Shown here one piece after another: positions 1-60,975 of a stretch of DNA of 64,000 nt. A program made the position numbers and the translations under genes. How positions within the stretch are numbered: position 1 is the first letter of the stretch; each line of letters starts with the position of its first letter. The stretch spans positions 37,076,001 through 37,140,000 of the forward strand of contig NC_042998.1 of NCBI RefSeq assembly GCF_006345805.1, written 5' to 3'. The notes under the pieces are model-generated. The model saw only the letters and a program-made list of their open reading frames with translations, ran no database searches and was not told the DNA's origin. Source of the stretch: Octopus sinensis (taxonomy: Eukaryota).

Positions 1-1121
1 CCTACATCCCTTCATTACTTGACCACTAGCCTATCATTGACATCGATCGAATCCATCAAAACACTTTGTTTATATCACATAACTCCCCTTTCTCAGTCTT
101 GCTTCCTAAATATCATCTCTTTCGCATGGTACTCACAGTTTTTCAAAAAAATATTTCTTCACACTTACGATCCACTCTCCAACAACACACATTCAATTCA
201 TATATTATTTCTCCGGTAAGTTTGCTACGACCGTTATACCATTCTTTCTCTTGTCACATGATAGACATCTCTTTGAGTCTAACTCAATACTCTTAAGATT
301 TCTAAATCTTATCCTAAATCATTTCATCTCAAATGTCAACAACATTCTCTTCATTAGCATTTATATTTGAGATCGATCGATGTGTAATATGCAGGGTTAT
401 ATATTATTTCTTGGATAATGACCAATTATTTTCTTTATTCAGTTATATCTCAATTGTGGAGATTTGTATGAATTTTACAAATACTTAGCAAGAAAGTTTA
501 TTCGCTACTTGTAAACACCAATAAAACATATCATAAATCTTTAATAAGAACAATGTGTAATAAAAACTAAGTTGTTCACCAAAATAGATTTTTACGATAT
601 ATCTAATTGCTTTTATGAGTTGTCATGATAAATCAGCAAAAATGTTTTTGTTCATCTTGGTACATCAGCAAAATCTTATTTCACCTCATACAAATTACTG
701 CTTTCATAATATTCAGTCAGCAGGTGTAAAAATCAAATTTCTATATTTGTTCGTAAATAATTCCATATATTTCCCAAATTTATCACGAATAACAAACATG
801 ATTGCATTGCATAAATTGCAGGTAAGACTTCTATTTTTTTAAAAACTATAACTTTCTCACAATCTATAATTTGTGAAGCACACAAATAGCTATATCCGAA
901 TTAGGGATTGTATGAAAATCTCTTCAAGCGAGTGCAAATATTCCAGATCGGAATTGTCAGAGTACTTGTTGCCTAATATTATTTTTTCATTTACACTGAT
1001 GCGTTAAACGGGCTAAATTTCTAGATAAAAGACAGGATGAAGAACCAAAGAACGAATAGAGAGGAACTATAATAAATAAAGCATGATTATTTCGTGCAGA
1101 AAAGCGAAATGCGGTTCGATG

Positions 1122-10580: not shown

Positions 10581-13500
10581 GTTTGTTATAAATTTGTTCT
10601 AGGCTGAAAACGATTGTACCGGCTTCGATTGCTTCAAATCGATTCTCCAACAACGCCGCAGTCAGCTGATTGGTTAAAAAGTGAAATGATGTGTGTGTGT
10701 GTGTGTGTGCGTGTTTGTCTGTGTGTGTGTGAGAGAGAGAGAGAGAGTGTGTGTGTGTCAGTGTTTGTCTTTGTCTGCGAATGCTTTTGATGAACAATTT
10801 CTATTTATGTATGTAAATAATTAAGAGTCATTGAATTACCGTTCAATGATCCAAGTATATGTAGAAGATCTTTGTTTTCTGAATGGTCCTACTCTCATTG
10901 AAATATGATGACACATCTTAAATTCCAATCTGACAAACGGCTTGATATATTGAGTGCTATGCTGAATTGGAATTCCTCAACAAGATATTAGTTGCTTTTC
11001 CATGCCGTGGTTGAGGTATTCCCCCAGTCTATTCACAACCGAACGCGGAATCAATCACAACGTTAAGAATGTGACAAAACCGTCCATTCCGTAGTGTCGC
11101 TGGAGAGGATCAGTGCAGTACAGCCAAGAATAGTATAAGGAAACCATATACAAAGATATGTCGTTAGCTACAACGACAGTGTAACTAAGGGGAGAGAAAA
11201 TATAGGTGGCACTATCACATCTAAGCCAAAGATCATGGCTTACTGATATTTAGCACCTAGCTGAGAGGTGTTACTTTCAAATGATGGAGGGGGCAAGGAC
11301 AATGAGACATAGTATATCGAGTCGGAAGTTTTAGCCGGTCAGATGCTGAAGCCCAGGAAGTGGGTGAATGGACAGCGCAGAACACCTTGTTGCAGTGCAA
11401 GTATAAGTTCACGAATAGCATACAGTATAACTACTTTATAATTACTTACGTCTGATTCCTGATTCCAGCCTAACTGCATGCGAAGTGAACCTCAGCTAGG
11501 ATGCACATTCATGGCAACAGTGAAACTTTCGTGTCCACTTTGTTCAAGAAGAGGATTTTTAGGATATCGCAGTAGTTTCCCAAACGCCACTTGAAAAGAC
11601 CAGCATTGTCGTCTGCATGACAAGGATAACAACACAGTTGCACAACGCATAACTACACACACCATCATAGGTAATTATTTTTCATTTTATAAGACAGAAG
11701 CTTACAATTATGTGTGCTTCTGGCTCACTTGCAGACTTAAAAATCCAACTACAACGATAGATGTTCCATGTTACAGCTGAAACTTGCAAATCCAATGGCA
11801 AGTGAACGGAATACAAACATGCACTGAAATCTATATTTTGTAAAATCCCCATCTACATATTTTGATAATGATAAAACAAAATTGGTCTCTAGGCAAATTA
11901 ATACCAATTTCCAACTCTTTCTTGTCATGTAAAAGGAATGTAACAACAGTTTATTCAGGTGCTGCAAGTCACAGAGCCAGATATCTACGAAACAAGAGAT
12001 GAGTGTAAATAATCGTTGTAAGTAACAGAAAAAGCTAAGGGGAAGGAGACAATTTGTCAATGTAAATATTTTTATAGTTTAGTGAAATGTATGTCATTCT
12101 GACATTTTGAGAGCGCTGTGAAGAATAAATATTTCTAGAAATAAAATACGTTCTTTACATAAGATGTATTTTCTGTCTACAAATGAATGTGGACAAAGCT
12201 TTGTTGAATATTGTCATCACTGCTACTACAAAACTACGAAGTCCAAGTTTCTGTTAAGATGGAGAGATGTAGGTACGATGAGAGATAAAAGGCCGTTTTG
12301 GTGGCTACACATTCTAAAGATGCTGAAATGTCTAATGCAATATCCAGTCAAACTAGATGTAGTGGAATTATTATAAAAAATTCAAACAATACTCTTCGGT
12401 ATATCTTCTTGCTCTTCTCTTTTCACGCATGTCTTTCATGATCTAAAGCGATAGATGTAATATGAGCTCAAACCTATTGCGTATCGTTCAGAATAAAGCG
12501 GTTTTTGTGAATATTTCATTTTAAGGTGTAAAAAGGTGAGTAAGTTATATGCAAATATATTTGGAGTTTTGCATGCAAATAGTGTCCTTTACATTTTCAA
12601 CGATTACTTTATTGGCATACTACACCGATACGTGGAAAATATATCTCTCGGTATCCGCCTTCTCTGGTTAGAACACATGGCACTTAGGAAGCTGCTAGTG
12701 AGTATTTGGACTAGCAAAAAGTTTTGTGAAAAGAAATCTGTTGATTTGAAGCAAGTTAAACATTGTAGGTCGAAATTGCCTCGGTGACACACGCTGAAAT
12801 CGAAAAGTCTGACAAGAACTTTCGATTAAAGAATCAGGAAAAAATGCATAGGCTTTTGCACAAGAAACCTTCATAGGATGAGAAGTGAAATGTTTTACTG
12901 GGAGAAAATTGAAGAAATACCTGGGAAAAGAGAGCATTCATTATGTAATTACAAACAGTTGGATGAGCGTTGGGGGAGCCTGGAAAAATGAGGAGAAATC
13001 GGAATGCAACAAAGGTGAATTTCGTAGAAACGTTTGGAAATACTAAAAGATCACAGCGTTTATGTTTAATTGAAATTCCCAGCATCCAGCCATTACATTT
13101 GTGTGCTGAATATATATGACCGGATATGCAATGGAGTCATTAAGCAGACTTATAAATAAATAATGTTTTTTTTAAGGTGTTTCATTCAGTTACTAATGTG
13201 ATTGAATTACTTAAGGTCAGAAGGAGAACGTTTTGCGAGTAACGAATTATAAGTATAAAATGTTCTGTAAGAGTTCTATAAGTCTTATTGGGAAGAGATC
13301 TCAAAACTCAGTTGCAAAATGTGACAGGATATATCATTCATCAAATAGTTTCTTTCTACTCTGATATTCATCCTGTGGCCATTACGATAGTTTAAAGTCA
13401 CTTATTCGATTAAAGCAGGTTATTGCCTCCAAACATTGCAGACATTTTTCTTTTATATAACATATATAACAAGTGTGAAGCTTGTGTCATTTGCTTATTT

Positions 13501-14183
13501 GACAGAAGAAGGAATAAGAATTGGAGAATATAAATAACATATTTAGCAGTTAGAGTCTGACTCAGTTAAATAACATTTAGTATGAGCATTAGTCATAGCA
13601 TTTCGCATGAAAAACCGAAATACAACAGACGTTATCTGTCGCAAAAATCCAAACGAAAATTATATGCAAAAGATTAATGAAATCCGAGAACAATGATATA
13701 TGATAATAACATTAATAGTGAAAGGTATAAGAGAGACAGGTGAAGTTATACGAACACAGTTGCAATGGTGTGTCAGTTTGGAATCCAAGTATGTAAAGTT
13801 AATAACTGGCGAAAACATTGCAATCTTGAAATCAATAATAATGTCAATACGATGGAGATATAGGGAGAAATAGTAGTCATCAATGCAACGCATAACATAA
13901 TCGAATGGCAGTTGTTGTTCAGTGAAGTTTGATTGAATTGATAAGAATCAGAAGTGAAATGAACGAAGAGGGACAATTATCCCCAGGAGTGTCATTTACA
14001 AATGGTTGTAAAATAAAAAATAAATTTAACCATTTGCATCGACATCACTTTTTAACCCTGATGAAAGGTGAAGTTATGCAGAATATCAAGAATAAAAATA
14101 TACACGAATGTGAATAACAGACTTCAAAAAAGAAATTAGAAGATGTTTTGCCATAGCAGGTTTCCAAAATGTCTTCCCTGTAT

Positions 14184-15240
14184 GAGGGTAAAACGGAACG
14201 CAATGCAAAAGTGGTTATGACATTTTTAAAGTTTACATGTGACGTTCCAAGTGCATGTGTAGCAGAAATAAATCTCCTTGTGTAAAAAATTATGTCCAAG
14301 ATATTTCGCGAGATAGTATTATTCATCACAAGCTGTGCAACCGGATGACGTGCATTCTCAAATATTTAAAAAATAATCTCGAGGATTAATCGTTTCATCC
14401 ATTTATTCACACACTTTCTCGCCGTCTTTGTCAAGAAATCCATGTCCTTAACACTGCCTTTCATAGGTTCGACCTGCTGGATGTCATAGCGTGCAGAATC
14501 CGGGCTGTAAGACAGGTAAGAAACCGCTGGTCAGTCTAATTTTCTGACTGCTTGATTTTGTCCCCAACATGTATTCGCATATTATCATGGGGAATATTTT
14601 GGGATGCTTGTCCAGTCTTCTTCCACTGAATAGCTTCTCTAATCTGTTTTCCAGACTCAATGTACCACTCGCCGTTCACGGTACAAATTCTGGTTCACGA
14701 TACTAGAAAATCAAGCAGAGTGAGACCTTTGAAATCCCAATAAATAGTCACCACGACTTTCGACGCAAATCGCTGACGTATGAATTTGTTAGGCATTGGA
14801 GACAACTGGATCTATTCCCTGAACTGATCGTTCGTTCCCAGATCATAAATGCATATCGACGTTATCTCTCCCCCCACTAGATCGAGAAAAACCGTGTTTT
14901 CTTTAGGTTGAAACACTTTCAGAATAGCAGAGTTGACATCTTCCAGCTTTATCTTCATATCGAACCTGCTGAGGTAACTAATTTGTATATACTTCCCAAT
15001 GCATGAAGCCGTCCACAAATGAATTGTTTCAGGCACGCAAATCACTTTGCTCTCTCGTGGTCGAATCTTGTGATTGACCGAAGTCGTTGTCTCCCACTTC
15101 GTGGTTTGTATTCGATACAAGTTACTCCTTCTCTAAACACCTTCAGCCACGCGACCTGATCCTCTGATCAACTGCGTCATCTCAATGAACAACCTAAACC
15201 CGACCATGCATTTAGGACCTCCTTTTCTTTCTATTATCAA
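14184..15240 (-). mobile_element. Degenerate mariner transposon
   Basis: Minus-strand fragments WLKVFREGVTCIEYKPRSGR and RQRFASKVVVTIYWDFKGLTLLDFL; mariner-like end TATGAGGGTAAAACGG at about 14182; many stops and frameshifts. Confidence 0.7.
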
Positions 15241-18485: not shown

Positions 18486-19429
18486 TATATATTTTTTTTC
18501 TCCGTTCAATATCAATGTGTTAACCTTCATCAACTTTGTATATGTTCAGCAAGAACATATATAAACACAAATATATACAACACAAAAATCCATCTGCTCT
18601 CCACAAAATCCAGCACTCTACGTTATCAAAACATTTTGCTGCATAACATTTTGAACTAGATTTTTTCCACGTGAGCACCACGAATTATTATTCTCCGTTA
18701 TTTATATTGTATTCTTCCAGACTTTGATCCCTTGAGCATAAGATGCTTGCGACTGTTATGTCTTACTCGGGGAAACAACTCAAAATGGCATTATAATCAC
18801 TTTGAACATTAATTTTGCTGTGAGATATCAAAATTAAATCATATCGCGCCATCAGCAGTACAACCGTCTATGTTCTTTATAATCTCGCAACTATTTTCTT
18901 TCTCTTACATTTAGAAAAAATACCTCTTTTCCTTAAAGACATTTTACTGAAATTTAACTACTGTGTCTCTTTTCTTTTATAGATGATTATTGTAATACAA
19001 CATTTTGTACTTTTGTATCCTGATTTCTGAATATTTATCTGTTTGTTAGCGTATCCCCGTGTTGATGTGTCTATAATACTGAAACCTCTGATTTGACTGA
19101 GTTTTCTCACTTTTTATAATTACGAAGCAAATTCATATTTAATTGTCTACCGCTCTGACTATGTATCCATCAAACGCAATGTTTCTCTGTATGTATCTAA
19201 GTACGTTGGCAGGTTTGGCTGTACAAACAAGGGAAACATGCACCTTAAAAACACCAATCGTGTACATTTATAGATGAAAAGCATGACCAAGGTATGAAGC
19301 TGAAAAGTCACAGAAATATTGCCGGTTAATATGGGCGACTTTGAATATTGAAATATAATTGTAGATAAGTATAAGTCTGATAACGAAAGTGAAAGCATGT
19401 GTACCCTTATGAATTTGTGTATGCATGTA

Positions 19430-19593
19430 TTTATAAACACACACACAGACACACACACACACAAAGACACACAGACAACAGACACACACTCACACACACA
19501 GAAACACACACATATATATGTATGTCTGTATGTGTATAATATATATATATATATATTATAATATATATATATATATGTATATATATATGAATG

Positions 19594-19625
<32 letters not shown>

Positions 19626-19671
19626 CATATTATATATACATATATATATATATATATATAGATATATATAT

Positions 19672-19716
<45 letters not shown>

Positions 19717-19790
19717 ACATAGTATATATATATATATATATTATATATATTATATATATATATATATATAATATATATATATTGTATACC
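19430..19790. repeat. Compound (CA)n/(TA)n microsatellite
   Basis: Direct inspection. Confidence 0.95.
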
Positions 19791-31790: not shown

Positions 31791-32271
31791 GAGAGAAGTT
31801 TCTTTTCAATTTGATGTGGACAGTTCATTGAAATTTCATTACAAAGCATTTTTCATTTCTCCTTTCTTTCATTTTTTCTTCCCATTGCCTACCAATCAAC
31901 TGGTGACTTTTGAAGATGTCAATTTTACGAAGCAGGACGGGAAAGTGAGGAAAAAACTGGAGAGAGCAGTCATTACTAGAAAATAAAAAAAAGAGTTGAA
32001 AGTTGAAAATCGTATGTGTCTTCTTTTACACTTGAATAGTCAAGACCCATGTTCCGTAAAGGAAGCTTTACCAACACTGAGGGATAACAATTCAAATATC
32101 CTAAAAGAAGTCGATAAAGGAGGGGCGATGGTAATCATAGACAAAATCTACTGTAAAGATAATATATTGGAAATTCTAACAGGCCAAACCTACTACAAGG
32201 AAGAACCTAGATATCCGGAAAAAGCAATGATAATTAAAATCAAGACACTAATTAATGAATACTAATATTCA

Positions 32272-32510
32272 CATTATTTACATTATTTACATTTGATAGA
32301 TATTTGTCCTCATCTTGTTTGTTGTCAGCACAACGTTTCGGCTGATATATCCTCCAGCCTTCATCAGGTGTCTTGGGGAAATTTCGAAGATATTTTTTGA
32401 TGTTGTTGCTGTTATTATTATTATTATTGTTTTTCAGTTCACTGCCTAGAATCGAAATGGGAATCTTGGGGTTAAAAGCCCGCGCTCTTAACCACTACCC
32501 CATATGCCCA
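32272..32510 (-). mobile_element. tRNA-headed, hammerhead-tailed SINE-like element (copy 1)
   Basis: Minus: GGGCATATGGGGTAGTGGTTAAGAGCGCGGGC..TTTCGATTCTAGGCAGTGA (A/B-box-like tRNA head), short (AAT)n, HHR, then a TAAATAATG-repeat tail. Confidence 0.75.
32327..32372 (-). ncRNA. Type I minimal hammerhead ribozyme (intact core)
   Basis: Minus: gacac CTGATGA a ggctg-gaggatatat-cagcc GAAACGTT gtgct; stem II ggctg/cagcc, palindromic AACGTT stem III. Confidence 0.8.
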
Positions 32511-32531
32511 CGTGCATATTCCAGGCAGTGA

Positions 32532-32592
<61 letters not shown>

Positions 32593-32605
32593 TAATAATA
32601 ATAAC

Positions 32606-32646
<41 letters not shown>

Positions 32647-32846
32647 TAATAATAATAATAATAACATTGAAAAATACATTAGGAATGAGAACCCAGGTTC
32701 GAAATTTCCTCAAGACACCTGATGAAGGCTGGAGGGTATATCAGCCGAATCGTTGTGTTAACAACAAACAAGAGGAGGACAAATATCCGTCAAATGTAAA
32801 TAATGTAAATATTGCTCATAATTCTTCATCTCTTAAATATAGAACT
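32511..32846 (+). mobile_element. tRNA-headed, hammerhead-tailed SINE-like element (copy 2, head internally deleted)
   Basis: GTGCATA|TTCCAGGCAGTGACCTG, about 130 bp of (AAT)n, GAAAAATACATTAGGAATGAGAACCCAGGTTCGAAATTTCC, HHR, and the same tail as copy 1. Confidence 0.75.
32714..32759 (+). ncRNA. Type I minimal hammerhead ribozyme (core point mutation)
   Basis: gacac CTGATGA a ggctg-gagggtatat-cagcc GAAT CGTT gtgtt; stems I and II are full, but GAAA is changed to GAAT. Confidence 0.65.
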
Positions 32847-33967
32847 ATACAAATATTCATCCACGGGCAAAGGGAAAGATTATTTATGCAACTGTAAAAT
32901 CCTGCTACATACGGGATGGAATAGATTTCCTCCAGCACATTCCACCCACTATCCCAGGCTGTACTATATTTACAAGCTGTGACTAACCTATCTTTATACC
33001 GATATATCTCGCACTTTGGTCCTGGAAGCAGTCAAACTCTGGGTAGAGAAACATAGAGAATGGATAAATGAACCCTTCAAAACTGACTTCGTCACCAAAG
33101 ACACACGCCTGGTACTAAGAGAGAGTACCTTTCAATTCGATAATAGAAAATATCGACAGTAAAGGACACGGCAATGGGGACGCAGTTTCCACCCTCATAT
33201 GTTAAATTAGTCATGGGATACTTGGAAGAAAAGCTTTACGAGGAAGTAGAGAAAATTTTTAATCAGGATTCTAAGAAAAACGTCATTAAGAAGTGGAAAT
33301 GTTTCCTCGAAGACTGCTTCATCTTTTGTAATTCAAGAAAATAATCTATTTTGGATTATCTTATCCAAGTAAGAAAATGAAAAAAAGAAATAAATGCTAC
33401 AATAGGATGGTACTAAAAATATATTTAAGCGGTCCCTGTTTTATTATATAAGTTATATACAGCTTGTATATATAGCTTCCAGCTATATATACAATATATC
33501 ATTACATATTAATACAAAGCTCATTTATGATGTTTGATTAATTGTAAATAGAGAATAGATTGAATTATAAATATTACAAAGTTATTTTTTATATTCTGCG
33601 TTTATTTTCCAGATTTATGAATATTGAACTAATATTTAATGTTTGTTCATGCAAAACATAAAATTACACAGAATATGGGATTTGACTAAACAAGTGTAAA
33701 GGAATATACGTATTCATAGGATTTTGAACTTTGAACTCTTTTTCATTTTTTTGTGATGACCACACACTACCTTCTTTTCTTATCCTTCCCATTTTACTTC
33801 TTAAAGTTGACATTTTGAACGCTCACCAGCCCTGGTGAGGGAACGTGTTTACTTACAAGTATGTTGATAGGTATAAAATGGGAAGGAAAAAAGGAAAAAA
33901 GGAAATGCTTTGTAATGAAATTTCGATGAATTAGCCACATCAAATTGGAACGAAACCTCTCTAGTTA

Positions 33968-34956: not shown

Positions 34957-35292
34957 TTAATATTTAGTGTGAAGCGCTTTAGCTTCAATCACACTCTGAC
35001 ATCTTCGACTGCATGAGAAAATTAAATTTTCAATTTCTTGCTGGGTGATCTTATTCCATTCTTCCTGAAGGGCATTCCATAATTGCTCAGTTGTTTTAGG
35101 ATTTCTGGCTTTCGAACGTTCTCCTAGAATATTCCATACATTTTCAATAGGATTGAGATCTGGGCTTTGAGCAGGCCAATCCATAACCATAACCTTTTCA
35201 GCCTTGAGGAAGTTCATGACCACCTTAGCCTTGTGACATGGGGCATTGTCCTGCATGTATATGGGTGGTCGCTTAGTTGAATTTCTCAGCAC
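34957..35292 (-). pseudogene. Tc1 transposase C-terminal fragment
   Basis: YMQDNAPCHKAK..DWPAQSPDLNPIENVW..EALHTKY-like C-terminus. Confidence 0.9.
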
Positions 35293-35914: not shown

Positions 35915-36388
35915 TCACTGAAATGCACCGTTTGCCATTTTTCTTGAGACCACAACGCATGTTCGGTTGCAAAGGTAAGACAACACTTTTTTATTCTTGG
36001 AGCTGATCAGTGGCTTCACTGCAGGTGCTCTTGCTTGTAGGTCATGTTCAACTAAACGACGAGACACAGTTTTTCGAGATAAAGTTTTCTTCAATACAAT
36101 GCTCATTTCCCGAGAAACAGCAACAGCAGTTTTAAATCTGTCCTTTTTAACCAACTTTACCATAGCACGATCTTCTCTCTTGGTCGTTTTTCTTGGCCTA
36201 CATGTAAACTTTCTTGCTTCACACGAACCACAATCATCGTAGACCTTAAGAATACCGTGTACAACACTTTTTGACTTGTTAAAAATCTTTGCAATAGATC
36301 CAATACTTAAATTATCCTTCCTTCGAAGCTTAATAATCTGCTGACGAATTGGTAACGGAATAAGTGGCATTATATTAACAAAGTACAC
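35915..36388 (-). pseudogene. Tc1 transposase N-terminal (HTH) fragment
   Basis: IRQQIIKLRRKDNLSIGSIAKIF..RPRKTTKREDRAMVKLVKKDRFKTA..LSRKTVSRRL..PAVKPLIS, typical of the Tc1 DNA-binding region; frameshifts downstream. Confidence 0.9.
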
Positions 36389-37735: not shown

Positions 37736-38650
37736 ATATACATACACAAGTCGAGTAGGCATTTCCGCTTGGATACTCGTGAAAGAAACAGTAGTTAATG
37801 CCAGAAACTAGCTAATATTTTATATTGACCGTTTTCACTTAGCAAGAAATGCAAAATTCAGAATTAACAGGTGAATGTATTCATTCTGTTTTTTTCATTG
37901 GATATATGTATTATATCCTTAGGGCTAAATGGCACAGTCATTGTTTTAGTCACCTGTCCAGGTTTGTTCCTGTCTCATTTTGATTGCCTTTTTTTAAATT
38001 TCCTGTAATAGTTTGGCAAGATTATTACTAATGAGTTGCTGTCGTTCTGCTGTTGCCTCAGTTTTCGCTGATAGCTGCTTGCATTTATCATCAATTCATT
38101 CGTTTGTATAAATTCGAACTGATATCTGATTATTACCTCAACGATTTTCATATTAAAATGAAGACGAAGAATAAGAACAAGAAGAATAACAGCATGGCGG
38201 GAACTGTAATTCCAACCAATGCACAAAGGCAGATAAATACAGCAATTAAATGGAAGAATATACAAATAAATAATAAAGAAAACGTCACATCATTGTGGAA
38301 ATTTCTTCACAATCCGACATATGTTTCGATTGAGCACTACATATACCCTTTGCAGGATTACTACTAAATTGGGACAGCTTCAGAAATAGTATGCCTTAAG
38401 TCTATTTATTTTACAGAACATTTACCGTATGCCATCCTTGACAAGTAATCACTATACAGTAATTCTATCGAGAATAAACAGAGACTAAATATCAATAACT
38501 GAAACACATATCATTCAATCTACACTATCGCATCACTATAAAATTGTATTGTATACACATCCATCATACAACCAACAGCTTACATAACACACATTTTTTT
38601 GCAGAAGGCACCTGGCAGTATAATAAAAAAAAACATGCATCTCAAACAAC

Positions 38651-39256
38651 ATACCTATTTCTTTACTACCCACGAGGAACTAAACACAGAGGGGACGAAC
38701 AAGGACAGACAAACGGATTAAGTCGATTTTATCGATCCCAGGGCGTAACTGGTACTTATTTAATCGAACCCAAAAGGATAAAAGGCAAAGTCGACCTCGG
38801 CGGAATTTGAACTCGGAACGTAGCGGCAGACAAAATACCTATTTCTTTACTACCGACAAGGGGCTAAACACAGAGGGGACAAACAAGGACAGACAAACGG
38901 ATTAAGTCGATTATGTCGACTCCAGTGCGTAACTGGTACTTATTTAATCAACCCCGAAAGGATGAAAGGCAAAGTCGACCTCGGCGGAATTTGAACTCAG
39001 AACGTAGCGGCAGACGTAATACCTATTTCTTTACTACCGACAAGGGGCTAAACACAGAGGGGACAAACAAGGACAGACAAACGGATTAAGTCGATTATGT
39101 CGACTCCAGTGCGTAACTGGTACTTATTTAATCGACCACGAAAGGATAAAAGGCAAAGTCGACCTCGGCGGAATTTGAACTCAGAACGTAGCGGCAGACA
39201 AAATACCGCTAAGCATTTCGCCCGACGTGTTAACGATTCTGCCAGCTCGCCGCCTT
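38651..39256 (-). mobile_element. Head-to-tail trimer of the tRNA-derived SINE (184-bp period)
   Basis: Units start ATACCTATTTCTTTACTAC at 38651, 38835 and 39019; only the last unit carries the full head (..TCTGCCAGCTCGCCGCCTT). Confidence 0.95.
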
Positions 39257-40989
39257 CAAATAACATACCACGCCACAAAATGACAATATATTCTGTAAAA
39301 GTACACGAAATAATATGTTAGAACAGGAAACAGATCTCAATAATATAACAGAATTGGAGTCTCATATGAACATAAGATATACAGTTAAAATGAAAGTACT
39401 TCAAATAACTCTGAGAGTAAATGATATTAAAACACGCATAAATTTATTGGAAACTTAGAGCGCAACTGTTACAGTTATTATAAAACTAAATTTTCATTAG
39501 TACTATTTTCAACACGCCTCTGTACAAACAACTGTACAAACAACATAGACACATAACGTTAATGTGATTACATATTTCGTGTCAGCGCACGTCGCTTACC
39601 CCTGGATATTTTAAGATGAAAATCATTTCACTTCTCAAAACATAAGTAAATTGACTGTCATAAAATGAATAGTTCTTTCCCGATTCATGGATGCTCCCGT
39701 CAATACATTATATGCAAGTATTAAGATGGATTGTTATTATTCTGTAGTTTTTAATCAAGCTATTTATGTAGCAAGGCGACGAAAGAACGATGAAGATGAC
39801 GAACGTATTGTGCGCTTGACAGATATAAAGATAATTTTCATCGTAATAAAGACGTACTTGCTCGCAATCTGCCTAGGAAATGGCTTTCTCATCAATATCT
39901 ATATATAACAGGTTAATCTTGTTACTGACCGCGCAAAGTTTCCATATGAGAAAACCAGTGATCCCATCAATGCCCCAGTTATTTTATACATAGCTGACTG
40001 CCATGCAGATAATCTGTTTGCATTGATATGCGAGCACAATATTCTGATTTGAAATTCAAAGGGTAAGGTGATGGCTTTAGTACGACAGAAAAGCACTACT
40101 TGGTCAAGTCATTGAAGATAGAGAAATTGAAAATGTATGTGCAATACAGAATGATATGAATACAAATAGAGAACAATGATGGTGATGATGAAATCGTTAT
40201 TATACAAGGAAAAAGTACGTATCATATGAAATATATAGATGAAGAAGAAAATAAAAAAAACACATTGCTGCGCTTCGTCTTTGTAACATATTGCTTGTTT
40301 CTGATCACGATTCAAAAACTGTTCGATTGGTAATATGTTTGACAATAGCATATATTATAGAGACGTTGTTACACATTGCAATTATATAGTAAAGACTATA
40401 TAATATATTATAAAATGTGTGTGTATGTATGTATACATGTATGTTTAAGTGTCTATGTGAGCACCACGCATATGTTTTACACTCGCTAATTGATACTATT
40501 ACACATACAAGTTTTGGTCCATACACCCCATCAAGCAAACGCATACGCAAATACACACACATATAGAAAGAGGAAGATAAAGAAGGATAAAAAGCGAGTC
40601 AGAGAGAATGAGAAGCAAAAACAGCTGCTAAAAATTATTTCACAATTCCATTTCGACCAACTCAGTATAGATGCAATTCCAAACTCTCAATTACACAGAA
40701 TATATTTGGTTCTAAAAAAAAATTCTTTTGTTTCTTTCACATTGAATGCTCACGGGACTCCATATTTAACTGTTTGTTGTCTGCTAACTACTGCTTATAG
40801 AGCGGCTTCATGCAAAAATTTGACGAAGCTAAGGGATACGTTTCTGTAGAAACAACAAGGTGATTCATTTGTTTGAGCTATTAACCTTCGAGACCTTGGT
40901 CAATGTCCCAACTAATGTCTAATTAGTACAAAAGTATTAATTAGATAAAGATACGTCTTCAAAAGTTTGTTTGTCTAATTAGCTTTATT

Positions 40990-41179: not shown

Positions 41180-43556
41180 CTTTGATAGGTTTCGGCCTGT
41201 ATAGGTCCAGGCCATGTCTAAGTTAATAGCACCACCTGGTGAAGTATTTTAGTCATATAATTTTGAGTTTTATGGGATCCGTTTCCTGTTTCACGTATTT
41301 TGGTTTGGTATTAAAGAGAGCTGGACTGATTGAGGCAAAATAGTTGTGATGTGATGTTATGTGTCCCGAGTTCACTTTTTGCATTGGACGGATCGCACGA
41401 GAACCAAGTCTTGAGTGCATTTTAAAGTTGATGCTAACATCATTTGTGCAATATTGATGGAATAATTTCCACATCACAAAAATAATGTAACGCTCCCGGC
41501 GGCGTTGGAGAGAGTAGAGATTGAGTGGTTTTCGTTGATCCCAATAGTCAATGCCTATCATACCGTCTGTTTTTCTTGTTATTGACCTCTGGAATGCTTC
41601 CACTTTTATAATGAGTTGATTCGTATGGGGTGACCACAGTGGGAAACAGTATTCAAGGTGGGGTCGGACAAGTGTAGGAAGGATGATGGTGTTGGCATCT
41701 CTAAACCGGAAAGTTCTGACAATGAAAGAGCACATCTTGCCGGCCAAGTCAACCTTGCTGTTTACGTGGGAATTCCAGCTTAGATTGTTATCAACAATTA
41801 CTCCAAGGTCTATGATCTTGCATGACACAAGGGAGTCACCCGACGGAAGAGCATATGGTAATTTCAGAGTATCCTTTTTTCCAAAGTGGATCAAATTAAA
41901 CTTATCTTCATTTAGAAGTATATTGTGTTTTTCCACCCAATGGACAACAGCAAACAGATCCAACTGAAGGCATGTTCGGTCTCCCATACTGTTCACAGCT
42001 TTCTGGAGTTTGGAATCATCTGCAAATATTTTCAATGTAGAATGTTTGTCTGCTATGTCGTGGGTGTAAATAATGAAGAGGAGTGTGCCCAACACAATAC
42101 CTTGTGGGACACCACGATTTACTTTGGCTGAGCTGGATCGGATTTTCTCGAACACAAAATGTCGGGTTCTGTTCGTCAGGAAACACATGATCCACTGCAG
42201 CAGCTTTCCACGGACGCCAATGCTGGGCAGTTTCTTCATCATGATTTTGTGGTCTACTCTGTCAAAGGCCTTGCTGAAATCAATGTATATGACGTCAGTG
42301 TTGGAACCTTCTCCCAAGCTTTTAAGATGTCATCAAAACGGTGCAGAAGATGCCAGAAGCACTCACAGCCATCACGGAAACCATGCTGGTGGAGGTTTAG
42401 CAGATTGTTGTCTTCGAGGAAGTGAGTTATTCGCAATATCACCACCCTCTCAAATATTTTAATGATATGAGAGGTGAGTGAAATCGGACGGTAGTTAACT
42501 GCAAGAGATTTGTTTCACCTTTTGAAGACTGGAACGACAGACTCGGAAAGAAAATGATCAGGAATGTAGCCTGCGTAAAGTGAGTCCCTCCAGCGCTCAG
42601 CTAGAGGAGGTGCAATTTAATATCGACACATCTTCAGGACAGTGGCTGGAAACTTATCGGGACCTACTGACGAGTTGTGCTTGATCTTATTTATTTCTGT
42701 TAGGATATCAGGAACACCAAATATTATGTCAGATATAGTTAGTTGAGGGTTTACATCACTGATATGTATATAGATGAACTGCATTAGCAGTATTGAAAAC
42801 ACAGCAGTGCTGTTTCTGTCGTATCAGGCAAATGAATTTTGCATCATCAGGTAGAGTGTCGTTCTCATCAACCAGAGGACCAGCAGTGGAAACAGCGACT
42901 TTATATTTTCTCAGCTTTTTTTTATTTGCAAAAGAAAAGAACACTTTCAGATTGCGCTTTATTTCCTCAATGGCCCAATTCTCCTCAGTTATCATGCTGT
43001 TTTTGGAGGATGTGTTTTTTTTATTCGAGCGATGCAAGTGCAGTCGAATGGGTGCGTTGCTGCTGGCAGTATTTAAGTTGGGTGGTTTTCTTGTTAATTC
43101 TTTTTATTTTCCTGATAATTGCTCTTCCATTTCTAGGGATTCTGCACTTAGATTTGTATACTGATCTTAATGGAGTATGTTTGGCGCATATATTTCTTGC
43201 AGTCTGTACAAATATCTGCCATGATGTGTTTATGTTGGAGGGTGGGGTGCGTGCGTGAAGGCCCAATCAACTTGTGAAAGATCATGACTGTGAAAGATCA
43301 TAAAGCTCGAATGGACGTACTGGAGAGATGTCATTGGATTTGATCATTGGTTGGTAAATTATCAGATACCAGAGAACCATGTCATTATCTGAGAGCAGAG
43401 GAGTTTTTTCCACTGCAATGTTTTGGATTCAGTGTCCATACTGTGACACATTGTTGGTTCATGAACAAGTTGAATCGGGAAAGAATTATCCATGAAATCA
43501 AAATATAATTTGAATGCTTCCTTATGAGCTGTTGAGGTGGAAAAACTTGACTTCAA
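41180..43556 (-). mobile_element. CR1-like LINE, 5'-truncated and degenerate
   Basis: Frameshifted pieces from the endonuclease tail (QLVHEPT) through SVGPDKFP and QHGFR to the RT; 3' hairpin GGCCTG-8nt-CAGGCC at 41194-41213. Confidence 0.9.
41253..42317 (-). pseudogene. LINE reverse transcriptase domain (354-aa open fragment)
   Basis: YIDFSKAFDRVDH, GVPQGIVLGTLLF, FADDSKL, DLGVIVD, LVRPHLEYC and SLQRRRERY motifs; not an independent gene because the upstream frame is broken. Confidence 0.9.
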
Positions 43557-53464: not shown

Positions 53465-53692
53465 CTTCATTGCCCAGAAGGAGCTAAACATAGAGGGGAC
53501 AAACAAGGACAGACAAAGGGATTAAGTCGGTTACATTAATCCTAGTGCGTAACTGGTACTCATTTAATCGACCCCAAAAAGATGAAAGGCAAAGTCAACC
53601 TCAGCGGAATTTGAACTCACAGCGTAACAGCAAACGAAATGCCGCTAAGCATTACGCCCGGCGTGTTAACGATTCTGCCAGCTCGCCGCCTC
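53465..53692 (-). mobile_element. tRNA-derived SINE (same family as 28482)
   Basis: Ends GATTCTGCCAGCTCGCCGCC; B-box reverse complement GGAATTTGAACTC; a further partial copy follows at about 53770-53885. Confidence 0.9.
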
Positions 53693-53932
53693 GGTTTGTC
53701 ATATTGGTTACTCTACAATACTGGTTTCAAATTTTGGCACAAGGCCAACAATTTGGAAGGAGGAGTAGTTCGATCCCAGTAATCAATTGGTACATTTCTA
53801 TTATCGACCCCAAAAGAATGAAAGCAAAGTCGATTTCAGAGCAGTTTGAACTGAGAACGTACAGACGAACGGAATACTACTAAGCATACACATACACGTA
53901 AGCACGCACACACACACACACACACACACACA

Positions 53933-54875: not shown

Positions 54876-56114
54876 CGAGGGGCGTTCAATAAGTAATGCC
54901 CCTGACCCACTTCCCATAGCAGTAGAGCAACGAAACTTGGCACAGTTATTAGTCTTTTTCTACATAGGAATCACCCAGAGTTACGCATTTCTCCCCTCAT
55001 TTGATGCAGCTCTGGAGACCGTTTTTGTAGAAGACCCCAGATTGGTCCTCCAACCACGACGTGACTTCAGAAATCAAGGCTGCACAATCTGGGAAACGCT
55101 TTCCTTTCAAAAACAACTTCATGGATGGACAGAGGTGAAAATCAGAGGGTGCAAGGTCAGGAGAGTAGGGGGGATGGGGGAGGAGTTCATAGCCGCAGGC
55201 CTGTGCTTCTGATCTGGCGACACGCGAGTTGTGGACCGGAGCGTTGTCCTGCAGGAGGAGGATGCCTTTGCTGAGCTTGCCCCGCCTCTTGATTTTGATA
55301 GCGTCTCTTAATTTCCTCAAAAGTGAAGCATAATAGGCTCCTGTAATTGTGGTACCCTTTGCCAGGAAATCTGTCATCACTACTCTGTCCTTCTTTGGAG
55401 GAGGTGAGTCACGGTGTTTCCACTGCATTGACTGGGCTTTGGTCTCTGGATCATAGTGATAGACCCAGGTTTCATCCTGTGTAATCAGTCTTTTGAAAAA
55501 TTTTGACTCATCTTCTTGGCACATCTCCAAATTCATCCTCGAGCAATCGACGCGTTCTTGCTTCTGGAAAGGTATGAGCAACCTGGGAATCCATCTGGCA
55601 GACGCCTTTTGCATATGCAAATGGTCATGAATGATAGTTTCTACAGACCCAGTACTAATCTTGACCTCATGGGCTATTTGGTGAATTGTTATGCGTCGAT
55701 CTTCCAAAATGGCAGCCTCAACTTGACGGACAGATGCCTCATGAATGGCAGAAGGGGGGCGACCATATCTCGGAGCTATTTCCACAGAGTTCCGACCATG
55801 TTTGAATTCACGATGCCAGCGTTTTACAAGGTCATATGATGGGGCATCCTCACCATAAGTTACTTTCATTTCATCAAAAGTCTCCCGTGCTGTGCGTCCT
55901 TTCAAATACAAAAACCGCATCACTGCTCGACACTCAACAGGCTCCATTTCACACTTGACTCAGTTCGAACACCTGTAAATCAGAAACCACAATTAGTTCA
56001 GAGCTGTAATTTGCCACTTACTCTATAGAGATATAAATAATTGCACATGCAGAATTTCAGCTAGATCAAACAACTGCAAGTGGGTCAGGGGCATTACTTA
56101 TTGAACGTCCCTCG
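54876..56114 (-). mobile_element. Mariner transposon, near full length (DD34D)
   Basis: TIRs of about 37 bp CGAGGG(G/A)CGTTCAATAAGTAATGCCCCTGACCCACTT with 1 mismatch; TA at both ends (54874-75 and 56115-16). Confidence 0.97.
54997..55947 (-). CDS. Mariner transposase (316 aa; in-frame deletion and premature stop, probably inactive)
   Basis: HTH region, RWIPRLL, TQDETW, QDNAP-34-D spacing and PPYSPDLAPSD. The segment usually found between PPPKK and DFL is missing. The TGA is followed by an in-frame GEKCVTLGDSYVEKD*. Confidence 0.9.
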   Translation of the reverse strand: MEPVECRAVMRFLYLKGRTARETFDEMKVTYGEDAPSYDLVKRWHREFKHGRNSVEIAPRYGRPPSAIHEASVRQVEAAILEDRRITIHQIAHEVKISTGSVETIIHDHLHMQKASARWIPRLLIPFQKQERVDCSRMNLEMCQEDESKFFKRLITQDETWVYHYDPETKAQSMQWKHRDSPPPKKDRVVMTDFLAKGTTITGAYYASLLRKLRDAIKIKRRGKLSKGILLLQDNAPVHNSRVARSEAQACGYELLPHPPYSPDLAPSDFHLCPSMKLFLKGKRFPDCAALISEVTSWLEDQSGVFYKNGLQSCIK

Positions 56115-58460: not shown

Positions 58461-58679
58461 AATCAACAGCTGTGCTGTGGCTCAGCCCAAGCTCTTCAAG
58501 GAAAACAATCGAAAATATCTGTTTATTTCTAAAAAAAACAAAAAGAAGACACAAATAACCGTTATGGAAATGCGGGATAGACAGAGCGGCAACAGCAATA
58601 CAGTATACATGTTTGGAAAGCAGAAGATAGGTTGGTTTCTTATTATGGAACCTGCTACTAAAATAGTAAAGAAATAAGA

Positions 58680-58878
58680 AGAGTTAGCACGCCGGACGAA
58701 ATTCGTAGCGGTATTTCGTCCGTCTTTACGTTCTGAGTTCAAATTCCGCCGAGATCGACTCTGCCATTCATCCTTTCGGGGTCGATAAATTAAGTACCAG
58801 CTGCGTACTGGGGTCATCTAACCGAGTCCTCGCCCACTTCGCAAAAACTTCGGGCCTTGTGCCCAGAGCAGAAAAGAA
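58680..58878 (+). mobile_element. tRNA-derived SINE, variant 3' end
   Basis: GTTAGCACGCCGGACGAAAT..GAGTTCAAATTCCGCCG..CATCCTTTCGGGGTCGATAAATTAAGTACCAG, then a tail that differs from the 28482 family. Confidence 0.85.
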
Positions 58879-60769: not shown

Positions 60770-60975
60770 AGTGACCGTGTGTGTAACGTTGGCGATTTTC
60801 TTTCTCCGTCTTCCCTTCCTTGGATCTTTCCTTTTCCTATGTTTCTGACGAAGAGCTCCGCTCGAAACGTTAAATCCTCCTTCTTTCTTTCCCTCTCTGA
60901 GCGTCCAATAACACTATACTTGTTCCACGTCCTCACGTTGTTTTCTCTTCGTGTTTTCATGTTTGGATTAACTAT
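60770..60975 (+). mobile_element. Solo PLE terminal-repeat-like element
   Basis: Pyrimidine-rich flanks around an intact minimal HHR; similar layout to about 50915-51050. Confidence 0.6.
60841..60875 (+). ncRNA. Type I minimal hammerhead ribozyme (intact core)
   Basis: gttt CTGACGA a gagc-tcc-gctc GAAACGTT aaat; stem II gagc/gctc, palindromic AACGTT. Confidence 0.8.

Follow-up and report, generated by a model that had tools for sequence, protein, structure and literature searches.

The window analyzed here is a 64,000-nucleotide (nt) stretch of the Octopus sinensis genome (contig NC_042998.1, positions 37,076,001–37,140,000, forward strand), and positions given below are those of the window unless another sequence is named. 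Positions 32259–32859 are occupied by an insertion, which carries a 13-bp target-site duplication and lies inside the remnant of a reverse transcriptase (RT) gene of a Penelope-like element (PLE). It contains two copies, L and R, of one element, and these abut 5′ end to 5′ end at 32511|32512. On the sequence evidence, the element belongs to a dispersed non-coding retroelement family of octopods; the four copies found come from three independent loci in two or more species. It is ~270 nt long and can be read as a 5′ head of ~75 nt, an (AAT)n run, a spacer of ~45 nt and a 3′ module of ~135 nt. The 3′ module looks like the module at the junction of the pseudo-long terminal repeat (pLTR) and the open reading frame (ORF) in a PLE. 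The interpretation favored here, with moderate confidence, is that the element represents a non-autonomous short interspersed element (SINE) of the tRNA type that is mobilized by PLEs.

The insertion and its two copies

The insertion was confirmed by comparison with an Octopus bimaculoides contig (L001) that carries an uninterrupted paralog of the interrupted sequence. L001 aligns to positions 32154–32270 and then resumes to the right of the insertion. The 13-mers that flank the insertion agree at 12 of 13 positions (p ~ 0.012 relative to shuffled flanks). Global alignment to L001 gives a score of 164 when one 13-mer is kept, 156.8 when both are kept and 144.8 when neither is kept, and the junction is gap-free solely when exactly one is retained. 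This gap-free fit with a single 13-mer shows that the insertion is genuine and that it duplicated 13 bp of its target site. The frame restored by removal of the insertion, LINEY-K-YSSTGKGKDY, matches LINEFQDSFTDKEKEY of a PLE-related protein (P0001) residue by residue. A preliminary description, made from the letters alone, had reported the 13-bp flanking repeat with one mismatch and a PLE-RT-like frame restored by excision; both are borne out by these alignments.

The same description placed the insertion in a Penelope RT remnant, and this also holds. The remnant (32059–32262 and 32876–33401 by tblastn with PLE proteins) is the sole PLE-coding remnant in the window and has 70% identity to P0001. 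The sequence flanking the insertion has protein relatives solely in octopus and other molluscs, the top one being LOC106883665 of Octopus bimaculoides. A Pfam run on the degenerate RT remnant itself yielded no match; its PLE identity was reached by way of P0001, a second protein (P0041) and their full-length relatives. P0001 is a member of a large mollusc protein family to which P0041 also belongs. An exhaustive HMMER search with P0041 yielded thousands of relatives, many of them 700–800 amino acids (aa) in length, and an RVT_1 domain together with a C-terminal GIY-YIG domain was present in five of the seven relatives scanned (724–817 aa). This is the canonical architecture of endonuclease-positive (EN+) PLEs. 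By these matches, the host of the insertion is classed as an EN+ PLE RT remnant. It should be noted that ~206 nt present in the paralog are absent from the remnant just to the right of the insertion (32860–32903 compared with L001 positions 123–373); this deletion is an event apart from the insertion.

The features of the locus are as follows (strand in parentheses).

32059–32258 (+): PLE RT remnant, left part; tblastn with PLE proteins, match to P0001, DNA match to L001
32259–32271 (no strand): target-site duplication, left, ATACTAATATTCA; direct repeat, L001 empty-site alignment
32272–32511 (−): copy L, full-length element, 240 nt; 5′ end GTGGGCATATGG, short 3′ end ...GTAAATAATG
32327–32372 (−): minimal type I hammerhead of copy L; descriptor match at 32329–32370, one helix I mismatch
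32412–32428 (−): internal (AAT)5 microsatellite of copy L; sequence reading
32448–32458 (−): copy L motif resembling a B box or T-loop, ATTTCGATTCT; 8/11 match to GGTTCGANNCC, sequence reading
32492–32502 (−): A box of copy L, TGGGGTAGTGG; 10/11 to TRGCNNAGTGG, sequence reading
32512–32846 (+): copy R, inverted partner, 335 nt; 5′ terminus GTGCATAT, long 3′ end
32536–32664 (+): (AAT)43.7 expansion of copy R; Tandem Repeats Finder
32714–32759 (+): hammerhead of copy R; helices I and II intact, A15.1 mutated
32815–32846 (+): 32-nt 3′ extension (“tail”) of copy R; alignment, present in R and C, not in L and D
32847–32859 (no strand): target-site duplication, right, ATACAAATATTCA; direct repeat, L001 empty-site alignment
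32860–33401 (+): PLE RT remnant, right part; tblastn, frameshifts, internal deletion of ~206 nt relative to L001

The two copies form inverted repeat arms (32272–32388 and 32698–32814) of 117 nt that are 92% complementary, and the sequence at their junction is ATATGCCCAC|GTGCATAT, i.e. CAC|GTG. Copy L begins with GTGGGCATA, followed by the A box, TTAAGAGC, a stem of 3 bp that bears the loop CTTTTAA, a spacer of 5 nt and CCCAT-TTCGATT-CTAGG; the B-box-like sequence TTCGATTC falls within 32448–32458. Next come CAGTGAACTGAA, (AAT)5, a short spacer and the hammerhead. The 3′ end of copy L lies 60 nt past the hammerhead, flush against the duplication.

Copy R retains GTGCATAT (32512–32519) and the final ~17 nt of the head, but has lost ~52 nt of it, and with them both promoter boxes (A and B) and the anticodon-like loop. 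It has a spacer segment of ~27 nt that is not in copy L. Its 3′ end, ...CTCTTAAATATAGAACT, is 32 nt past that of copy L. A T at position 32750 gives the hammerhead core GAAT in place of GAAA, and the ribozyme of copy R is presumably dead. The claim of two copies of one element, inverted and joined at their 5′ ends, is thus upheld, except that copy R is partial; of the paired hammerheads that were described, the core is intact in copy L only, and the 32-nt extension had gone unremarked. Apart from L and R, no further copies of the element were found inside the window.

The octopod family, its head and its hammerhead

Octopod DNA was sampled by way of loci that encode relatives of the PLE RT (n = 11, ~211 kb), for a total of ~275 kb. 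Two more copies were found in this sample. Copy C (L007, positions 14630–14900, minus strand; O. bimaculoides CM046610.1), a monomer, measures 271 nt and has the long 3′ end. Its hammerhead is perfect, with helix I formed by GACAC/GUGUU, and its A box (TGGCGTAGTGG, 11/11) and B box (GAGTTCGATTCC, 10/11) are 33 nt apart. Copy D (L009, positions 13397–13640, minus strand; O. sinensis CM016859.1) is likewise monomeric; its hammerhead has decayed, and its 3′ end is the short one. The 5′ terminus of copy D, TGGGC, follows its own reverse complement, GCCCA, and forms the palindrome GCCCATGGGC (L009, about 13640–13650, minus strand), which may be the last trace of a head-to-head partner or a result of hairpin priming.

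The order head, (AAT)n, spacer, hammerhead and tail is common to all copies, and the flanks of C and D are unrelated. Pairwise identity is 80%–90%, e.g. 82% over 242 nt between L and C and 89.6% over 202 nt between R and C. The 5′ termini of L, R and D coincide within ~3 nt. Head and hammerhead tail thus occur together in both C and D; their co-occurrence in most copies was a check named in the preliminary description. Neither copy lies inside a PLE coding remnant, the nearest being 3.9 and 1.7 kb away, respectively; therefore no PLE-sequence target preference is claimed from the one case in the window. A very rough estimate of copy number, of the order of 10^4, follows from three insertions in ~275 kb of DNA at loci picked around PLE remnants.

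The element has a coding capacity limited to short chance ORFs without protein relatives. The 80-aa sense-frame translation showed no match in a collection of 5.8 billion proteins, and exact-pattern scans gave 0 matches in JGI metagenome contigs (two patterns) and in prokaryote genome contigs (one pattern).

The head displays a series of collinear features at tRNA spacing: an A box, a GG-containing stretch resembling a D-loop, a 7-nt loop on a 3-bp stem with a T at tRNA position 33, a variable region of 5 nt and a T-loop reading TTCGATT. Copies C and D share the anticodon-like loop CTACTAA; that of L is CTTTTAA. A scan of 253 kb for A and B boxes with no more than one mismatch each and a spacing of 25–50 nt found three pairs, compared with 0.1 expected. 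One pair is that of copy C, and the other two belong to copies of a different, classical tRNA-like SINE; the boxes of copy L are weaker (A 10/11, B 8/11). Three copies have a defined 5′ end, situated ~9 nt upstream of the A box. It is credible that the head carries a type 2 RNA polymerase III (Pol III) promoter, and it probably descends from a tRNA. The different SINE is ~380 nt in length (L003, about 19380–19770, minus strand; L004, about 30–410, plus strand). It has an A box of 11/11, a B box of 10/11 and a (CAA)n-type tail, and is without a hammerhead.

The hammerhead of copy L reads GACAC-CUGAUGA-A-GGCUGG-AGGAUAUA-UCAGCC-GAAA-CG-UU-GUGCU, with a predicted cleavage site after GAAACGUU. It was detected with a minimal-hammerhead descriptor consisting of CUGANGA, an optional 1-nt bulge, a helix II (minimum 4 bp) with a closing G-C pair, GAAA, an insert of 0–6 nt that is palindromic, UH and a helix I (minimum 3 bp). 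This gives two matches in the window, at 32329–32370 (minus strand) and at an unrelated site, 60841–60875 (plus strand); 300 first-order Markov shuffles gave 0 matches. Cervera and de la Pena (2014; PMC4209133) reported four features of PLE minimal hammerheads that emerged from their data without being imposed: an unpaired nucleotide between A9 and G10.1, a G10.1-C11.1 pair, a loop-less palindromic 15.2–16.2 segment, and a long helix II with a short helix I. All four are seen in copy L (CUGAUGA-A-GGCUGG...UCAGCC-GAAA-CG-UU), and they are partly built into the descriptor, such that they are not independent of the match count.

The lengths of helices II and I are 6 and 5 bp, respectively; the PLE-type ranges are 5–8 and 4–5 bp. 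The conserved core CUGANGA...GAAA...UH, in type I order, is present in L and C; R has GAAU and D has several core changes. In the hammerhead pairing 95.5% of cells pair, as against 16%–50% when the partners are slid, and the minimum-free-energy fold of the monomer contains helices I and II. By these properties the copy L motif is assigned to the PLE-type minimal type I hammerheads, in agreement with its first description as a minimal Penelope-type ribozyme. The ATG inside the hammerhead CUGAUGA opens a 25-codon ORF; the peptide it encodes shows no similarity to any of 264 PLE proteins.

Mode of mobilization and rival explanations

The 3′ ends of the copies are bimodal and 32 nt apart, i.e. short in L and D and long in R and C. 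The termini lie 60 nt and ~90 nt past the predicted cleavage site, and the short end of L is pinned by the target-site duplication. The hammerhead ATG is 33 nt before the predicted cut, and the 3′ ends are 93 and 121–125 nt after the ATG. The geometry is similar in the PLE studied by Frangieh et al. (2024; PMC11167929), where the cut is 26 nt after the start codon and reverse transcription starts at 111–118 nt. The purified PLE protein initiates at two internal RNA sites, the interval between which constitutes the tail. It nicks and extends both DNA strands, favoring targets of AT-rich sequence, and it uses uncleaved RNA; hammerhead mutants leave insertion unimpaired (PMC11167929). PLE insertions often have an adjacent inverted copy and an optional tail of 30–40 bp (Craig et al. 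2021, PMC8557442). The 32-nt extension fits this optional tail (PMC8557442, PMC11167929). An inverted copy that abuts the 5′ end is present at one of the three loci, that of the window, where the dimer arms end at different 3′ sites and both attain the 5′ terminus of the RNA. Mobilization by a PLE is inferred because the two 3′ ends spaced 32 nt apart and the head-to-head dimer are published signatures of PLE insertion. The proposal in the preliminary description that the element borrows PLE machinery therefore gains from the anatomy of the insertion, but it lacks a match to the tail of an autonomous PLE in the ~275 kb.

The following series of events is proposed. Pol III would start ~9 nt upstream of the A box, at GUGGGCAUAUGG. 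A PLE RT/GIY-YIG protein supplied in trans would bind the uncleaved 3′ module, its endonuclease would nick an AT-rich target, and reverse transcription would begin at either of two internal sites and proceed to the 5′ end of the RNA. At the window locus the target strands would have been nicked 13 bp apart, and each 3′ end would have primed its own cDNA on a separate SINE RNA, one from the short start and one from the long. Joining of the two full-length cDNAs at their template 5′ ends would then give an inverted dimer and a 13-bp duplication. Afterwards the right arm would have lost ~52 nt of head, undergone mutation of the hammerhead core and expanded its (AAT)n run. Staggered nicks with two independent primings appear to be the simplest account of the dimer. 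An origin by snap-back (hairpin) synthesis was considered and is less likely, since snap-back arms would be identical in extent, and the arms here differ in their 3′ sites as well as in an internal segment of ~27 nt. The partner PLE would be expected to have a pLTR/ORF start of the form CUGAUGAAGGCUGG...GAAACGUU, related over its first ~120 nt, and a predicted N-terminus like MKAGGYISRNVVLTTNK.

As to the hammerhead, helix III is just ACGU; therefore the active core cannot fold from one RNA. The hammerheads of the genomic dimer are on opposite strands, hence they share no transcript and the dimer supplies no RNA dimer. Every genomic copy spans the cleavage site. Cleavage would part the promoter head from the RT-recognition tail, and propagation is unlikely to need it. 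Because the copies span the cut site, because cleavage would sever the head, and in view of the PLE data obtained in vitro, the hammerhead is more likely to be kept as an RT-recognition or binding module than for obligatory self-cleavage. Regulated cleavage, in trans or assisted by protein, is a possible extra role. A broader proposal, put forward tentatively and with less confidence than PLE mobilization itself, is that this may be the first SINE shown to be built for PLEs rather than for LINEs (long interspersed elements), with a Pol III head joined to a mimic of the PLE pLTR/ORF junction that comprises a minimal hammerhead and the two internal RT start sites. In this proposal the dimer may be the footprint in vivo of double-strand, two-template target-primed reverse transcription (TPRT), a process observed to date in vitro only, and the minimal hammerhead may have been retained as a structure that the RT recognizes rather than as a processing ribozyme.

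Several results weigh against the identification of the element as a PLE-mobilized tRNA-type SINE. ARAGORN finds no tRNA in any copy, either at default settings or relaxed to a 70% threshold (-ps70); the Rfam tRNA model gives no match at E ≤ 10 on stretches of 96–296 nt; and no acceptor stem can be drawn in the head. Rfam searches of the window, of sub-regions and of copy C at gathering and permissive thresholds gave noise matches only. The label “tRNA-headed” in the preliminary description therefore holds for the A and B boxes and the loop motifs at tRNA spacing, and finds no support from Rfam or ARAGORN in any copy. Since the loop differs between copies and no tRNA model matches, the tRNA species is not assignable. 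The Rfam hammerhead models show no family match even at E ≤ 10 on stretches of 86–296 nt; this is expected, because the classical models need a helix III hairpin, which minimal variants do not have, but it still counts against the assignment. No helix pair is altered on both sides across the four copies, so that covariation gives no argument for selection, and the family is known here from these four copies only. For copies C and D, no target-site duplication above chance was found. The ~275 kb of octopod DNA yielded no autonomous PLE whose hammerhead or 3′ module is related to that of the element; the sampled loci were all picked around PLE remnants, and the 11 remnants are mostly 5′-truncated or adjoin assembly gaps. 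Finally, the element lacks poly(A), and its short 3′ end falls within a tandem 9-mer, (TAAATAATG)2-3, which resembles the tails of some LINEs and SINEs.

This last property would suit an ordinary tRNA-type SINE dependent on a LINE (with a CR1, L2 or RTE-type tail), in which the hammerhead is an inert passenger derived from a PLE fragment or by chance. Two of the four copies finish in the 9-mer, the window has non-LTR RT ORFs (e.g. 41253–42317), the (CAA)n-tailed SINE in L003 and L004 is another octopus tRNA-like SINE, and the failure to find a PLE partner points the same way. This explanation is nevertheless unlikely. The hammerhead has PLE-specific hallmarks not expected by chance, and the 3′ ends spaced 32 nt apart and the blunt 5′-to-5′ dimer with unequal tails are PLE signatures that have not been described for LINE TPRT; moreover, no partner LINE with a matching tail was seen in the small ~275-kb sample. 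Slightly less unlikely is a non-autonomous derivative of a PLE (solo pLTR-like or retrozyme-like), transcribed by read-through or Pol II, whose tRNA boxes are accidental or belong to a PLE promoter. The failure of the tRNA detectors on all copies would be explained, and animal retrozymes and short non-autonomous Penelope elements are known that are without a recognized promoter. Such a derivative would not account for the collinearity, at tRNA spacing, of the A box with the D-loop-like, anticodon-like, variable and T-loop features, nor for a defined 5′ end ~9 nt before the A box in three copies.

Two further explanations have very little probability. Chance nesting of a tRNA-SINE fragment beside an unrelated PLE tail fragment might be entertained from the window alone, which has one locus only; it is contradicted by copies C and D, where the same head, spacer, hammerhead and tail order recurs at two other loci with unrelated flanks. 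The least probable of all is a foldback element or miniature inverted-repeat transposable element (MITE), i.e. a DNA transposon with 117-bp terminal inverted repeats and a duplication. It would account for the long inverted arms and the flanking direct repeat; however, the arms terminate at different positions, and C and D, as monomers, lack both an inverted partner and terminal inverted repeats, which contradicts it. A 13-bp duplication is also atypical for DNA transposons.

Other sequences of the region and comparison with known systems

The window is AT-rich (33.6% G+C) with abundant microsatellites, and its ORFs include mariner/Tc1-like and non-LTR RT types. ORFs resembling mariner/Tc1-type transposases are present at 54997–55947, 34957–35292 and 35915–36388, all on the minus strand; the first of these (316 aa) looks nearly intact. 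The ORF at 41253–42317 (minus strand, 354 aa) has non-LTR RT-like motifs by eye and is a candidate LINE partner for other SINEs of the region. A 184-bp unit is repeated 3.1 times in tandem at 38646–39207 (93% matches) and runs into tRNA-like sequence at ~39200–39270. Similar chance translations of the ORFs at 53545–53883 (plus strand) and 58482–58817 (minus strand) suggest dispersed copies of the 184-bp repeat.

The second minimal hammerhead, at 60841–60875 (plus strand), reads GUUU-CUGACGA-A-GAGC-UCC-GCUC-GAAA-CG-UU-AAAU and is unrelated to that of the element. It sits in a short CT-rich repeat (roughly 60775–60965) between microsatellites. A relative in O. bimaculoides (L007, 17591–17623, minus strand) has a mutated core, CTGTTGA, and lies beside a (TA)n run. 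From this hammerhead and its relative in L007, octopus therefore has at least two repeat families with minimal hammerheads. In another of the sampled loci (L010, 18978–19311) there is a perfect palindrome of ~330 bp, with arms 100% complementary, that has identical hammerhead-like motifs on both strands (19073–19115 and 19177–19219) in which the G10.1-C11.1 pair is missing; the palindrome may have arisen in assembly, as an artefact, or as a very recent foldback.

Among the hammerhead-bearing non-autonomous elements of animals, the published retrozymes have no recognized promoter, and their PLE dependence has been inferred from co-occurrence. A family in which a Pol III promoter of its own is combined with a PLE-type minimal hammerhead and PLE-type insertion scars would provide a small, tractable template for the study of PLE trans-mobilization, of the purpose of the minimal hammerhead, and of priming in vivo by both nicked strands. 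If the interpretation is true, PLEs would join the list of SINE partners. It would also aid annotation of an apparently abundant class of octopus repeats. The element represents a modest though real extension of the known ribozyme-bearing parasitic DNA.

Cephalopods have tRNA-derived SINEs, which include OK, OR1 and OR2 of octopus (Ohshima and Okada 1994) and the Ceph-SINEs (Akasaki et al. 2010). These share with the octopus element the host group and a tRNA-related head, and the element may be one of them. No hammerhead or PLE link for any cephalopod SINE was found in the searchable literature.

The animal non-LTR retrozymes (Cervera and de la Pena 2020, PMC7229834; Li et al. 2026, preprint 10.64898/2026.07.22.740005) are likewise non-coding, hammerhead-bearing and proposed to be PLE-dependent. 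They are built of direct tandem repeats in which every unit contains a classical type I hammerhead, are processed to circular RNA and have no recognized promoter, whereas the octopus element is non-tandem, with a minimal hammerhead and internal Pol III boxes. Its identity as a retrozyme was rejected on the same grounds: the copies are monomers or an inverted dimer, and direct tandem repeats are not present.

In all of the listed hallmarks, the ribozyme shares the architecture of the minimal hammerheads of PLEs (PMC4209133; Lunse et al. 2017). Dispersed single hammerhead motifs, and opposite-strand pairs 100–700 bp apart, have been reported (PMC4209133). Those motifs were assigned to the pLTRs of autonomous PLEs or to presumed truncated PLEs, whereas in the octopus family, whose element is ~270 nt long and has a tRNA-like head, the motif is a fixed module. 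The insertions made by PLEs (PMC8557442, PMC11167929) resemble that of the window in the inverted copy abutting the 5′ end, the 30–40 bp tail, the AT-rich target and the use of both nicked strands. They differ in that the elements are autonomous and the inverted copy is 5′-truncated; both octopus arms reach the 5′ end of the RNA, and the template is SINE-sized.

The Sm-alpha and Sj-alpha elements of Schistosoma (Ferbeyre et al. 1998; Laha et al. 2000) are SINE-like retroposons with a Pol III-type promoter and a type I hammerhead (PMC6765202). The hammerhead of Sm-alpha is canonical, with loop-loop contacts, and matches the classical models, and the elements are largely in tandem arrays. In contrast, the hammerhead of the octopus element is minimal and of the PLE type; it lacks a loop on helix III and has one additional nucleotide after A9. 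The octopus element also occurs as dispersed monomers or an inverted dimer, and displays a PLE-type heterogeneity of its 3′ ends. Both are short, non-coding retroposons in which a Pol III-type promoter region is combined with a type I hammerhead, and among the known systems the octopus element would appear to work most like Sm-alpha.

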